The translations under genes and the position numbers were made by a program. The notes beneath the pieces are model-generated. The model was not told the DNA's origin. It ran no database searches and saw only the letters and a program-made list of their open reading frames with translations. A stretch of 64,000 nucleotides of DNA from Orbicella franksi (lineage: Eukaryota), in the NCBI GenBank assembly GCA_964199315.1, contig OZ116698.1, forward strand, positions 7,564,001-7,628,000. The letters are read 5' to 3'. Of this stretch, positions 22,014-45,988 are shown in pieces; position 1 is the first letter of the stretch; each line of letters opens with the position of its first letter.

Positions 22014-22156
22014 TTATTCCACATAGCCAAGATGATGACAGTAATGTCTTCCAGCCATGTCCATACAGCATACTCCGCCAGTCCCACAATCACCCGAGTC
22101 TTTGCATGTCTGAAACCCAGTGTAGTATGGAGTTCTTAGGGGACAGACGGTGGAAA
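22014..22156 (-). CDS. Terminal exon, 6-Cys WAP-like domain
   Basis: [47 protein letters not shown]; tttttcctcag acceptor, phase 1. Confidence 0.8.
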
Positions 22157-43400: not shown

Positions 43401-45988
43401 TTAATCCCCCTGGAATTTGCAAACATTTCGGTTACCTGGATTGCAGTTTGAAAATTCAATAATTTTTTTGATTTTTCAGAAACTTTCTCAGGAAATCTCC
43501 CTACCATAAACCCTCGTTTCTAGAGTCCCGGAGTTTGTGGTCGAAGGGACAAGGCGCCCTTGAACACTTGGCTTACACTGGAACGCTTTTCGATCCTCGT
43601 TGCTGACTTCATTTGAGCCTTTTGATTGGTTGATGGTCTCCACTATAAAGCTTATCCAATTCAAAAACGGTTGGAAGCGTTTTGGCAGTTCAACTAAACC
43701 ACATGGACAGTTATCTATACTTAGTGAAAGTTGAGACGGTTTACATTCAGATATGACGTGAATGATTGTCCAATGCAAATAGCAACAAAACTGAACTCTG
43801 AAATCCCTTGTTTGCGTAGTATTGTGCACTATGCTACTAACTGAGAACACAATGACTAAGATTGCCGAATGCCAAAAAAAGTTACACAAGTCAACTTATT
43901 AAATTAGCGTAGTCGAGGAGTTGAACTTGGTGAAGCTGCGCTACAAATCAAGCAGCGACTAGATTAAGAGATAGAGCGGGTGACGAAAACTAGGTCGTTG
44001 TTCTCCTCCTTTATTGACCAAATACTCAGTCTTGCCGTGTCCTTAATTGTACATACAGACCTAACAGTTACTTCCAAGGGGAAGAAATGCATAGACGAGA
44101 AGTGGTAGTTGCTGCGTGCACTTACCAGTCCATGACAATTGCTCATTGCTACTGTTGATCTTGATCTAGCTTTCACTCTTCCGACGTAGTGGCAATTTTC
44201 CATGGTATGCCGTTTTAAAACTCTTCCATGTTTTCCTAAAACCTCCACTTTGAACGCAGGTGCTAATAGTCTCCTGTTTCGTTTCAAATGGAGATGAAGA
44301 TCATTTCCAAAAGCTGACACCTTAAAATGCACTTCTTCGTTGTGATCTACCTCCTCTGAAAAGCGGCGAATACGTATTCTCGGATACGATAGTTCGTGAG
44401 AGACGATGCTGCCTTCCTCGTCCACTTGAATTGGATGCACAACGTTGTACTCAGGTACTAAAGGTGATTAAAGATAGAAACACGTAATAAGGTTCAGATA
44501 TTAAATTATTTTACCCCCTTTACTTATAATGATGCCAGATTGGAAAGACTATTGGGATAGGACAATCTGCAACTAGGGAGCTCGAACCCAATTTCTAACT
44601 TAAGAAATGAGTTGAAAAAATTTGTTTGAACTTATTAAAGCGATAATTGTTATATAATATTAAGTCCTATGTAATCAGGATTTGTCCAAAAGAACTCAGG
44701 GGCCGGGCAGTGGATAAGCAGTAAACATTTCAATGTCCGTTGATATAGGTATGTTCCTTATATAGCATGCAGGGTCCAGTGCCAAGATTTACAGGGTAAG
44801 GGAATCTGAACAGGGTCTTGATTCCTCTGGGCTCTATTTCCAGCTGTTTAAGAAGATCAGAACGAACGCAATCATGCAGATGGGGTAAGAAAGGCGGGTT
44901 GGCAAAACGACAGGAAATGGGTTCTAGGTCTCATCAAGCACGTAGTTGTCTTGATCCCCAGTTATTTTAAAATTCCAAGCCACGTGAGATATGTTTCCCC
45001 AGGCTTTCATCTTTGTCGTTCGCTTCTGTTTGCACTATTAAAGTGCTTGGGTGTGTTAATGCAAAGTTATCGGCCAAGTTTAACTTCCATTTTTATGTCG
45101 TTCGCAAACAAAGATAACCGTCGAGCTCCAACTTACCCAGTATGTGGCCTCACCCTTTTGAAATCACAGTGTGATATAATTAACTTTTAAAACTTGTGAA
45201 ATGGTAAACAGGTAAAAGGAACATTACCGTCGTTATGGGAATCTATTCCAAACAAGCGGGAGAGATCTCTGGTTGTCATATGTCTATGGATGCCGTGGGA
45301 ATAAGGCTGCATCAAAAAGTGAAAAACAAATACAGCCATTAGTGTTATCGTTACGAATGTTTATGTTCCTAACCGTTTTAATCTTAACTGGACACCGAAA
45401 CACCGATCGCATCACTGAAACACCGAAACAGGACGAGGCCCTACCATGTCACTTTGTCTCACCATATAGTTGCTATGGCAGTCGTGGACAGTGGCTGTAC
45501 AAGCGAACTTTTATCCATAATTGGCAAGTTAAATGAAACAATGCAAAATCACGGCCTACGGTCAATGTCCATTCCACTCACTGGGAGCAAAAGCTCTAGC
45601 CTGATTACTTTCGTCAAGAGCGCCGTGTAAATTGAAGGTTAGCAATAACGCCACATTGGTTCCACTTAAACACGTTTTGTTTTTTCCTGAGCCTCGACCA
45701 TGTTTCTCCACTACCGTGTTATTATCAAGTCACCGTAGGCATGTAATAATGCATGGTAGTTTACTCAACAAATTAGTTACTAGAATAATTTCGTGAACAC
45801 ACCAAACATGAGGAATTGATTTGCCGTTCGACATAACTTTCACATACAAACCGGTCTATCTATTGATGGTAATCATGAACAAACTCTCATGTACTTACAT
45901 GCGTTTTCTTCAGTTCACCAATGGATAATGAACATAAGCACAGAACCAGTTTAAAGATCTTGAAACATCTTTCTCCCCCACCATCCAT
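22014..45988 (-). CDS. ADAMTS-family metalloprotease-like protein, about 1521 aa: signal, prodomain, M12B catalytic, disintegrin-like, TSR, Cys-rich, short non-spacer linker, 3 TSR, 2 CUB, acidic Ser/Thr/Gly linker, WAP, WAP-like
   Basis: 34 GT-AG exons with consistent phases, 4566 nt total, no in-frame stop before 22014. The core through CUB2 is well supported by family motifs; linker exons and the join to the WAP exons are less certain. Confidence 0.85.
22673..22816 (-). CDS. WAP (four-disulfide core) domain exon
   Basis: [48 protein letters not shown]: 8 Cys in WAP spacing; ttgcag acceptor, G|GTAAGG donor. Confidence 0.85.
23350..29611 (-). CDS. Low-complexity linker exons, all phase 1-1: 29522-29611, 29280-29366, 28226-28276, 28056-28163, 26891-27034, 26599-26649, 23925-23981, 23350-23427 (possible extras 26243-26276 plus 25153-25199)
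   Basis: Pyrimidine-rich AG acceptors and G|GT donors, lengths multiples of 3, open frames rich in S/T/E/D/G with N-glycosylation sequons; no domain homology to confirm them. Confidence 0.6.
29954..32336 (-). CDS. Two CUB domains: exons 32198-32336, 31049-31293, 30540-30696, 29954-30141
   Basis: [31 protein letters not shown]; [37 protein letters not shown]. Confidence 0.92.
31494..31995 (-). mobile_element. 5'-truncated non-LTR retrotransposon with restriction-like endonuclease (R4/Dong-like) in an ADAMTS intron
   Basis: [39 protein letters not shown] matches the RLE PD-(D/E)xK region; flanked by (TAA)n at 31424-31493 and 31996-32022. Confidence 0.85.
32683..33243. mobile_element. Non-autonomous hAT-like element
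   Basis: TAGGGGTTGCCAC../..TGGCGAGCCCTA termini; 8-bp TSD ggcacaac/ggcacaaa; internal aaagttgc repeats. Confidence 0.75.
33482..34566 (-). CDS. TSR repeat exons 34437-34566, 33959-34163, 33482-33644
   Basis: [15 protein letters not shown]; [15 protein letters not shown]; [16 protein letters not shown]. Confidence 0.93.
34833..39153 (-). CDS. Disintegrin-like, TSR1 and Cys-rich exons 38994-39153, 38187-38288, 37385-37536, 36639-36702, 36209-36317, 35422-35546, 34833-35145
   Basis: [74 protein letters not shown]. Confidence 0.95.
36706..37020 (-). mobile_element. tRNA-derived SINE with (ATATTC)n tail abutting an ADAMTS splice acceptor
   Basis: A-box GGTGGCCTCATGG, B-box GGTTCGAGCCC; similar to the + copy at 42106-42392. 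Confidence 0.85.
37575..37800 (+). repeat. Intronic minisatellite with unit about gtaaagtagctgtattagtatt
   Basis: Degenerate tandem copies seen directly. Confidence 0.8.
38341..38731. mobile_element. MITE (PIF/Harbinger-like termini)
   Basis: GGCCTGTCCAAACG ... CGTTTGGATAGGCC with internal ccaaaca/tgtttg repeats, in a TAA/TTA context. Confidence 0.8.
39403..39639. mobile_element. Short TIR element with 6-bp TSD
   Basis: attcat|CAGGGTCGGCCA ... TGGCCGACCCTG|attcat. Confidence 0.8.
39893..42723 (-). CDS. ADAMTS catalytic-domain exons 42545-42723, 41419-41505, 40828-40952, 40539-40582, 40145-40250, 39893-40021
   Basis: [50 protein letters not shown], Met-turn NIMAS, WSACS. Confidence 0.95.
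42106..42392 (+). mobile_element. tRNA-derived SINE, same family as 36706-37020
   Basis: gaggcatggtggcctcatggttagtgcgctcg..gggtccgagccctgg; body matches the minus-strand copy. Confidence 0.85.
42975..45306 (-). CDS. ADAMTS prodomain exons 45228-45306, 44126-44457, 42975-43164
   Basis: [53 protein letters not shown]|[20 protein letters not shown] (furin site) EVHACGT (Cys-switch-like). Confidence 0.92.
43245..43560. mobile_element. Degenerate MITE-like repeat in an ADAMTS intron
   Basis: ggcgtttcc.. / ..aaggcgcc ends, internal gaatggaa/ggaaat motifs. Confidence 0.45.
45899..45988 (-). CDS. ADAMTS exon 1, signal peptide
   Basis: [30 protein letters not shown]|GTAAGT. Confidence 0.8.

Follow-up and report, generated by a model that had tools for sequence, protein, structure and literature searches.

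Contig OZ116698.1 of Orbicella franksi carries, within the stretch of 64,000 nucleotides that we analyzed (positions 7,564,001 to 7,628,000, referred to as the window; about 39% G+C, no N), a single protein-coding gene on the minus strand, whose coding sequence runs from 45988 to 22014 in window coordinates. We consider it highly probable that this gene is transcribed into one spliced mRNA encoding a secreted ADAMTS protein of 1543 amino acids with a C-terminal tail of CUB domains, linker and WAP-type modules, for which we propose roles in the matrix and in binding. The same architecture is found in corals, an anemone, hydrozoans and a scyphozoan.

The gene is visible as a series of short open minus-strand segments, from 46.0 down to 22.0 kb, whose individual translations match Pfam families ranging from the reprolysin propeptide to CUB and WAP. 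Exon junctions were chosen by requiring GT and AG at the intron ends, an open frame and the best match to a guide protein, P0050 (1537 residues), which was obtained by searching a representative library with the CUB1 exon and ranked 50 in a list swamped by cubilins. When P0050 was searched against the window with tblastn, it was covered end to end. The resulting model has 36 coding exons and one 5' untranslated exon, and its intact coding sequence of 4632 nt is interrupted by 35 introns, all of them canonical GT-AG, which leave the frame open across all 1543 residues. A second reference was L001, an intronless 5855-nt JGI contig from a close relative. It contains one uninterrupted open reading frame (ORF) of 1485 codons (positions 267-4724), the product of which, P0151, shares 93.8% amino acid identity with the window protein. 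The blastn alignment of L001 is colinear with the model at all exon boundaries except those of exon 32, which L001 skips. An earlier, sequence-only reading of the window had placed the gene at 22014-45988, and these proved to be the exact ends of the coding sequence, with the ATG at 45988 and the stop codon ending at 22014. Its model of 1521 residues was about 22 residues too short, probably because one or two mini-exons had been missed, and the linker that it had drawn as one stretch is split over ten mini-exons. The features of the gene, all on the minus strand, are as follows.

46448..46562 (approximate ends), minus strand: 5' untranslated exon, upstream of exon 1; L001 bases 2-116 align here with 82% identity
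45899..45988, minus strand: exon 1; ATG at 45988, hydrophobic signal-peptide-like N-terminus, found by tblastn of P0050 residues 1-23
45306-45228, 44457-44126 and 43164-42975, minus strand: exons 2-4; propeptide (Pep_M12B_propep, 86.3 bits)
42723-42545, 41505-41419 and 40952-40828, minus strand: exons 5-7; reprolysin-type catalytic domain
40582-40539, 40250-40145 and 40021-39893, minus strand: exons 8-10; reprolysin-type catalytic domain, with Pfam Reprolysin on the exon 10 region
40147..40164, minus strand: zinc-site codons A-H-D-T-G-H, continuing as S-L-G-M-N-H-D across the intron
39153-38994 and 38288-38187, minus strand: exons 11-12; disintegrin-like domain, PF17771 (ADAMTS_CR_2) on both
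37536-37385 and 36702-36639, minus strand: exons 13-14; central thrombospondin type 1 repeat (TSR), Pfam TSP1_ADAMTS/TSP_1
36317-36209, 35546-35422 and 35145-34833, minus strand: exons 15-17; Cys-rich domain, about 60 residues of short spacer and the start of TSR2 (ADAMTS_CR_3, Adt-1)
34566-34437, 34163-33959 and 33644-33482, minus strand: exons 18-20; rest of TSR2, TSR3 and TSR4 (TSP1_ADAMTS)
32336-32198 and 31293-31049, minus strand: exons 21-22; CUB1 (Pfam CUB, 45.2 and 53.2 bits)
30696-30540 and 30141-29954, minus strand: exons 23-24; CUB2 (Pfam CUB, 39.9 and 30.8 bits)
29611-29522, 29366-29280, 28276-28226, 28115-28056 and 27034-26891, minus strand: exons 25-29; linker, junction-resolved
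26649-26599, 26156-26100, 25209-25153, 23981-23925 and 23427-23350, minus strand: exons 30-34; linker, with RNA joints
22816-22673, minus strand: exon 35; WAP domain with eight Cys and a CC doublet, RNA joints on both sides
22156-22014, minus strand: coding part of exon 36; WAP-like module with six Cys and the stop codon TAA, RNA joint from 22673 to 22156
19890..22013 (approximate end), minus strand: 3' untranslated region of the last exon, from the alignment of L001

The donor of exon 1 was resolved at CAT/GTAAGT, where L001 is colinear. At the other end of the gene, L001 bases 4580-4816 align to 22158-21922 and bases 5006-5855 to 20732-19890 (blastn). The last exon of CUB2 ends in phase 1 (CAG/GTAAAC), exons 25-35 are all of phase 1-1, and exon 36 is entered in phase 1 and closes with the TAA at 22014, so that the earlier observation of phase-1 exons running without a stop from CUB2 to two Cys-rich exons is borne out by the splice sites. 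Both CUB domains have phase-1 introns at their borders and a phase-2 intron inside. Such phase 1-1 modular exons are compatible with the exon shuffling that had been proposed.

RNA was aligned to the interval 22001-28000 of the window, using Logan contigs (X1 and X2) and raw polyA runs (X22 and X24); RNA runs contain 14-27% of the words of the region 22.0-31.4 kb, and RNA depth is present in the bin 22001-22200. Seven joints with CT..AC ends, which correspond to GT..AG on the minus strand, fall exactly at predicted positions: 26891 to 26649, 26599 to 26156, 26100 to 25209, 25153 to 23981, 23925 to 23427, 23350 to 22816 and 22673 to 22156. All seven are present in X1 contigs at a depth of 18-47, with exon pieces identical to the window, and six also occur in raw X24 reads, five of them with 5-12 reads each and the joint from 25153 to 23981 with one read; the joint from 23925 to 23427 is seen in X1 only. 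Together, these joints form a chain from exon 29 (27034) through the linker exons to the last exon (22156). In addition, an X1 contig of 1173 nt ends on exon 29 and has 1038 nt further 5', which, if colinear, would reach about 20 nt into exon 20. The X24 reads, which carry the same species label and cover window positions 22059-27027, show many exon differences from the window, with most reads 95-99% alike, and probably stem from a divergent population or a sibling species.

Complete transcripts were found in relatives. The proteins P0050, P0153 and P0156 are full-length and derive from Logan contigs of 4.8-5.6 kb, which can only be cDNA, because the gene spans 24 kb. Counting L001, intronless full-length cDNA contigs from four related taxa encode everything from the signal peptide to the second WAP-like module in one ORF. 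Exon 32 (25153-25209) is a cassette of 57 nt or 19 residues that is included in the RNA of this species and in P0050 and skipped in L001 and P0151.

The encoded protein starts with a signal peptide and continues with a propeptide, a reprolysin domain, a disintegrin-like domain, one TSR, a Cys-rich domain, a very short spacer, three more TSRs and two CUB domains. CUB2 is followed by an acidic, Cys-free linker of 248 residues, a WAP domain and a WAP-like module with six Cys. The presence of both the propeptide (PF01562, 86.3 bits on exon 3) and the reprolysin domain (PF01421) places the protein among the ADAMTS proteases; on the full-length ortholog P0050, Reprolysin scores 66.5 bits, and the best PDB sequence matches of the catalytic region are ADAMTS13, ADAMTS5, ADAMTS1 and ADAMTS4. 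Two dibasic sites, REKR and RLIR, lie near the propeptide (exons 2-4). PF17771, PF19030/PF00090 and PF19236 match successive exons in the same order as in P0050, in which four TSP1_ADAMTS stretches are found. In each of the two CUB domains, the two encoding exons together cover positions 1-110 of the Pfam CUB profile, which in P0050 scores 160.6 bits over two stretches. The ADAM_spacer1 family (PF05986) has no match on the window exons, on P0050 or in the precomputed Pfam list of any cnidarian ortholog; its position in exon 17 (34882-35064) is taken by about 60 residues between the Cys-rich domain and TSR2.

The linker (residues 1201-1448, exons 25-34) contains neither Cys nor Trp and has 41 Asp/Glu versus 18 Lys/Arg. 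It is rich in Ser, Thr and Asn, with 20% Ser plus Thr, and has ten N-x-S/T sequons. An acidic-flanked Ser-Gly cluster, D-S-S-G-S-G-S-G-D, is kept in hexacorals and absent in medusozoans. By this composition, the term "proteoglycan-like" from the sequence-only reading seems a fair description, and glycosaminoglycan attachment to the linker is predicted.

The last 95 residues are strongly conserved across orthologs. By Pfam, module 1 (exon 35) is a WAP domain, matching PF00095 with 21.9 bits at a gathering cut-off of 20.8, whereas module 2 (exon 36), with only six Cys, remains under the cut-off at 15.3 bits; of the two WAP domains reported earlier, the first therefore stands and the second, taken alone, is WAP-like only. 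Pfam WAP matches the tails of 10 of 10 orthologs, with a best E of 9.8e-8, and the tandem tail of P0151 scores 26.9 bits over two stretches. Eight Cys are found in module 1 of all orthologs. The spacing is the canonical C-x5-C-x5-CC in medusozoans, and anthozoans have one extra residue, x6, before the CC doublet. In module 2, the residues at positions Cys2 and Cys7 are not Cys. Elafin has disulfides 1-6, 2-7, 3-5 and 4-8, so that Cys2 and Cys7 pair with each other, and module 2 fits a WAP domain minus one bridge because its two missing Cys are partners in that scheme. We assign it with moderate confidence as WAP-derived with one disulfide pair missing. PLAC, the usual C-terminal six-Cys module of ADAMTS proteins, was considered for module 2 and rejected, as no Pfam PLAC match was obtained at E up to 1.

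For the tail, AlphaFold2 gave a model with a predicted local distance difference test score (pLDDT) of 85. Superposition of module 1 (residues 1-50) with VIA-align gave top rows that include SLPI (Z 3.8), omwaprin (Z 3.4) and nawaprin (Z 3.4), with 33-35% identity. Among the Swiss-Prot models of the AlphaFold database (AFDB), tandem-WAP proteins that span both modules rank highest, with WFDC5 at a probability of 0.95 and an E of 1e-2, together with SLPI, whey acidic protein, perlwapin and waprins. A family profile of the tail aligns in register with SLPI domain 2, Cys on Cys, and its eight-residue Cys2-Cys3 loop lies over the SLPI segment C-L-M-L-N-P-P-N-F-C; in the tails, this loop begins with Leu, Ile or Met, a hydrophobic residue as in SLPI, where the Cys2-Cys3 loop is the protease-binding loop, with Leu as P1. 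On this likeness, an inhibitor-type function of the tail is conceivable, and we put it forward tentatively.

To judge from the compared sequences, the architecture is the standard, ancient form of a single-copy pan-cnidarian orthogroup and is not seen in Bilateria. It is present, including the tail, in the stony corals Oculina, Desmophyllum, Pocillopora, Stylophora, Porites and Acropora, in the anemone Nematostella, in the hydrozoans Hydra and Hydractinia and in the scyphozoan Rhopilema; partial entries exist for the anemone Actinostola and the octocoral Paramuricea (with CUB). Orthologs in RefSeq and UniProt have about 1485-1580 residues, share the order of domains and end in the same tandem of Cys-rich modules. 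They include Oculina patagonica XP_078346423.1, Stylophora pistillata PFX21709.1 / A0A2B4RY32, Pocillopora XP_058972389 and entries of Acropora millepora, Nematostella vectensis (isoform X2) and Hydra vulgaris (isoform X1), and the named entries are 61% (Nematostella) to 90% (Oculina) identical to the window model. By region, identity to Nematostella is 78% for the catalytic domain, 75% for WAP1, 74% for TSR2-4, 72% for WAP2, 65% for CUB2, 62% for CUB1, 36% for the poorly conserved short spacer and 32% for the linker. The tandem WAP-type module occurs in one copy in the 497-Mb assembly. Automatic annotation files these orthologs as "ADAMTS 6-like" (RefSeq) or "ADAMTS16" (UniProt, Stylophora), and their precomputed Pfam lists show CUB, with WAP absent from all. 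Entries from Pocillopora named "papilin-like" in RefSeq were considered as protease-less isoforms and rejected, since they represent this gene with the N-terminus cut off, the predictions beginning at a Met inside the catalytic domain.

When the protease-to-TSR part was used as the query, none of the bilaterian ADAMTS proteins among the 120 best hits had CUB, whereas the cnidarian orthologs all have it; the bilaterian hits, named ADAMTS9/20, 18 and 7, mostly contain ADAM_spacer1. This agrees with the statement in the sequence-only reading that among vertebrate ADAMTS only ADAMTS13 has CUBs and none has WAP. That reading had also called the architecture unusual, which holds in that no bilaterian hit has it, but it is no local oddity, being standard across Cnidaria. 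A literature search turned up no account of an ADAMTS that combines CUB with WAP, and a paper on the Nematostella matrisome treats ADAMTS proteases and WAP-bearing collagens separately (PMC12549020).

The zinc site of the window protein, H-D-T-G-H-S-L-G-M-N-H-D, departs from the consensus HExxHxxGxxHD in that the catalytic Glu is replaced by Asp (codon GAC), with the three His and the final Asp kept. In an alignment with 13 orthologs, the window is the only anthozoan sequence with Asp; 8 of 8 other anthozoan orthologs have Glu (HE[TS]GH), including the database entries, which keep HExxH where the window has HDxxH. Glu is also present in Rhopilema and P0183. Other residues occupy the position in Hydra (P0182, Asn), P0159 (Asn), Hydractinia (P0181, Ser) and P0185 (Gly), all of which retain the three zinc His and the rest of the domain. 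The alignment thus indicates that the catalytic Glu is replaced independently in several lineages, and P0182, P0181, P0185 and P0159 likely represent repeated conversion within one orthogroup to a pseudoprotease. The window enzyme, with its His-Asp-x-x-His, is probably weakened rather than dead. A "crippled" protease, which the sequence-only reading had thought possible, is unproven: Glu to Asp is a conservative change, and activity might remain.

Comparison with known systems places the protein between several families. Among vertebrate ADAMTS proteins, only ADAMTS13 is known to have a pair of CUB domains at its C-terminus, a feature that it shares with the coral protein, and its structure 6qig_A is the best-scoring solved structure for the catalytic-to-Cys-rich part (E 7e-78), although it ranks top largely because it is the longest chain. 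ADAMTS13 differs in having a full spacer, eight TSRs and a very short propeptide, and in lacking an acidic linker and WAP. Since it is not among the best 120 full-length hits, the CUBs of the cnidarian form and of ADAMTS13 were probably gained independently. With module 1, the proteins SLPI, elafin, WFDC5 and the waprins share eight Cys and the CC doublet, and SLPI, omwaprin and nawaprin are its nearest structures. These are small, free-standing secreted proteins, whereas here the pair forms the tail of a protease of 1543 residues; relative to the SLPI/elafin type, anthozoan module 1 has six instead of five residues before the CC doublet, and module 2 has only six Cys. Papilin and ADAMTS-like matrix proteins also combine ADAMTS ancillary modules with inhibitor-type modules (Kunitz in papilin); papilin, however, has no catalytic domain, Kunitz instead of WAP, and no CUB. 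In cnidarian fibrillar collagens (Hydra Hcol, Nematostella NvCol2), the WAP domain is N-terminal, in a different class of host protein without a protease domain. The WAP domains of these two collagens mark WAP as a common cnidarian matrix module (PMC12549020).

We propose that the protein would be secreted into the mesoglea or matrix, with the propeptide being cut off at a dibasic site, and that the TSRs and CUBs would hold it on the matrix or on a substrate. The linker would act as an extended stalk with heavy glycosylation, possibly including glycosaminoglycans. At its end, the tandem WAP tail may serve as a binding head. Its Cys2-Cys3 loop matches that of SLPI in length and in the hydrophobic first residue; the head would most likely bind, and possibly inhibit, a serine protease or another matrix partner. 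As the Glu is replaced independently while the tail stays conserved, non-catalytic functions are probably central, which suggests a non-catalytic role at least as important as proteolysis.

Several observations, given in this and the next paragraph, weigh against the reading of one transcript with a tandem WAP-type tail and a binding role. The same-species junctions that connect exons 24, 25, 26, 27, 28 and 29 (29954 to 27034) lie outside the interval to which RNA was aligned; they rest on splice sites, reading frame, the 5' part of the X1 contig and the cDNA of relatives. WAP-less forms may exist: Oculina RefSeq isoform X3 (P0161) reads through the donor of exon 32 and stops, which predicts a form without WAP, and P0158, a JGI contig of 3762 nt from a related coral, ends a few residues past exon 26 (about 29280), where it reads into the intron and represents either an unspliced precursor or a short isoform without the distal linker and WAP tail. 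It could be that the WAP exons, alone or together with the distal linker exons, form a gene of their own further downstream, driven by a separate promoter and starting with a separate signal peptide, and that their frame continuity with the CUB exons is coincidental. Phase 1-1 exons being common in extracellular genes, frame continuity alone is weak evidence against this, and direct RNA evidence in this species is confined to 22001-28000 and does not extend to the junctions between 29954 and 27034. However, the RNA joints connect exon 29 to both WAP exons, and the cDNA contigs of four related taxa contain all modules in one ORF. On translation, neither exon 29 nor any linker exon has a Met or a signal peptide, and a scan of 22818-29955 for an ATG with a hydrophobic stretch and a phase-1 donor gave no convincing signal-peptide exon, only weak candidates with poor donors, in line with what the sequence-only reading had found there. 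The separate WAP gene, which that reading had named as the finding that would speak against it, was looked for and not seen, and we regard it as extremely improbable; the single gene is upheld.

It could also be that the two C-terminal modules of this single gene are not homologous to WAP but form an independent, cnidarian-specific disulfide knot that is alike only in Cys spacing. Structural similarity to the WAP fold is weak, with Z below 4, and in VIA-align the best structural rows for module 2 are knottin toxins (Z 2.7-3.1). Foldseek of the tail against the PDB gave nothing with E below 0.1 (lowest 0.38), the best WAP row having an E of 1.5 and follistatin, Dickkopf and SLPI being intermixed, and a search of PDB sequences with the tail family profile yielded no significant WAP chain, its best rows being SLF1, double-knot spider toxin, microplusin and SLPI (E 2.2). 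WAP is omitted from the precomputed Pfam lists of all orthologs and did not come up when full-length P0050 was scanned with an E limit of 0.1. Against such an independent knot, Pfam WAP is the only consistent family match and exceeds the gathering score for the isolated tail, all ten orthologs match it, medusozoan copies have the canonical spacing, the top structural rows of module 1 are three different WAP proteins, tandem-WAP proteins head the AFDB Swiss-Prot list, and the two Cys missing from module 2 are precisely a bonded pair in elafin. We therefore consider an origin outside the WAP family unlikely and retain the WAP-type tail. As to a possible inhibitory role, cnidarian collagen WAP domains are structural, not inhibitory (PMC12549020). 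As for the catalytic domain, the Asp codon is read from the assembly and may be a private allele or an assembly error, in which case the ADAMTS protease of this species would be normal and active. Glu is present in the eight other anthozoan orthologs, the one with 93.8% identity among them; a single third-position base separates GAC from GAA/GAG; the catalytic domain apart from the Asp is 97% identical to that of the closest relative; and Glu-to-Asp mutants of matrilysin keep substantial activity, which we count in favor of a normal, active enzyme. On the other side, the assembly base is unambiguous in the window, and the same Glu is lost repeatedly in the orthogroup, to Asn, Ser and Gly in medusozoans, which argues that the family tolerates its loss. 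An allele or error of this kind is a real possibility, if not the one that we favor. At the opposite end, the orthogroup could be a pan-cnidarian ADAMTS lineage with dispensable proteolysis, a matrix-anchored scaffold whose WAP head on a stalk captures or inhibits a serine protease. This would rest on at least four losses of the Glu (Asp here; Asn and Ser in the hydrozoans; Gly in P0185, transcript-derived and of medusozoan type; Asn in P0159, from EukProt), and we consider it rather improbable as a whole; if true, the protein would be a protease turned inhibitor carrier, with no bilaterian counterpart.

The introns contain several repeats. An interspersed repeat of about 280 bp lies at 25480-25760 (also 24600-24930). 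When 25480-25760 was searched against the assembly, first-look candidates exceeded 3700, and the 40 copies that were scored showed 86-89% identity. In X1 and X2, RNA word depth at 24.6-25.0 and 25.4-25.8 kb lies in the thousands and up to tens of thousands, and loose ends are numerous; as the repeat has thousands of copies, the signal at 25480-25760 is ascribed to other copies. An embedded RNA gene at these depth peaks was considered and rejected, because there is no Rfam match and 25480-25760 is a dispersed repeat (the peak at 24.6-25.0 kb was outside the copy search); the depth peaks do not belong to the ADAMTS gene. In the CUB1 intron, at 31420-32040, there is a retroelement fragment with a minus-strand open segment of 156 residues that resembles the C-terminal region of a reverse-transcriptase ORF; on either side of the fragment lie long microsatellites of ATT/AAT type, which translate as poly-Ile, poly-Leu or poly-Asn. 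Two further intronic copies of one repeat, at 36835-37095 on the minus strand and 42071-42322 on the plus strand, have opposite orientations and a similar open frame with a ten-residue motif and H-C-V-V-F-L, and look like another dispersed element of the genome.

In all animals, the extracellular matrix is shaped by ADAMTS proteases, whose binding partners are determined by their C-terminal modules. Cnidaria possess a conserved member, present in single copy, with two CUB domains, no spacer, a stalk predicted to be glycosylated and a tandem WAP-type tail, a combination that is matched by no bilaterian hit and has been hidden by automatic annotation as "ADAMTS6-like". It raises the questions of whether a protease and inhibitor-type modules that are joined in one chain control one another or a third enzyme, and of what explains the repeated loss of the catalytic Glu in an otherwise conserved protein. 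Both can be addressed, because Nematostella and Hydra, which carry orthologs, are genetically tractable. For coral biology, the protein offers a defined matrix component to follow in data sets on calcification, wound healing and settlement.

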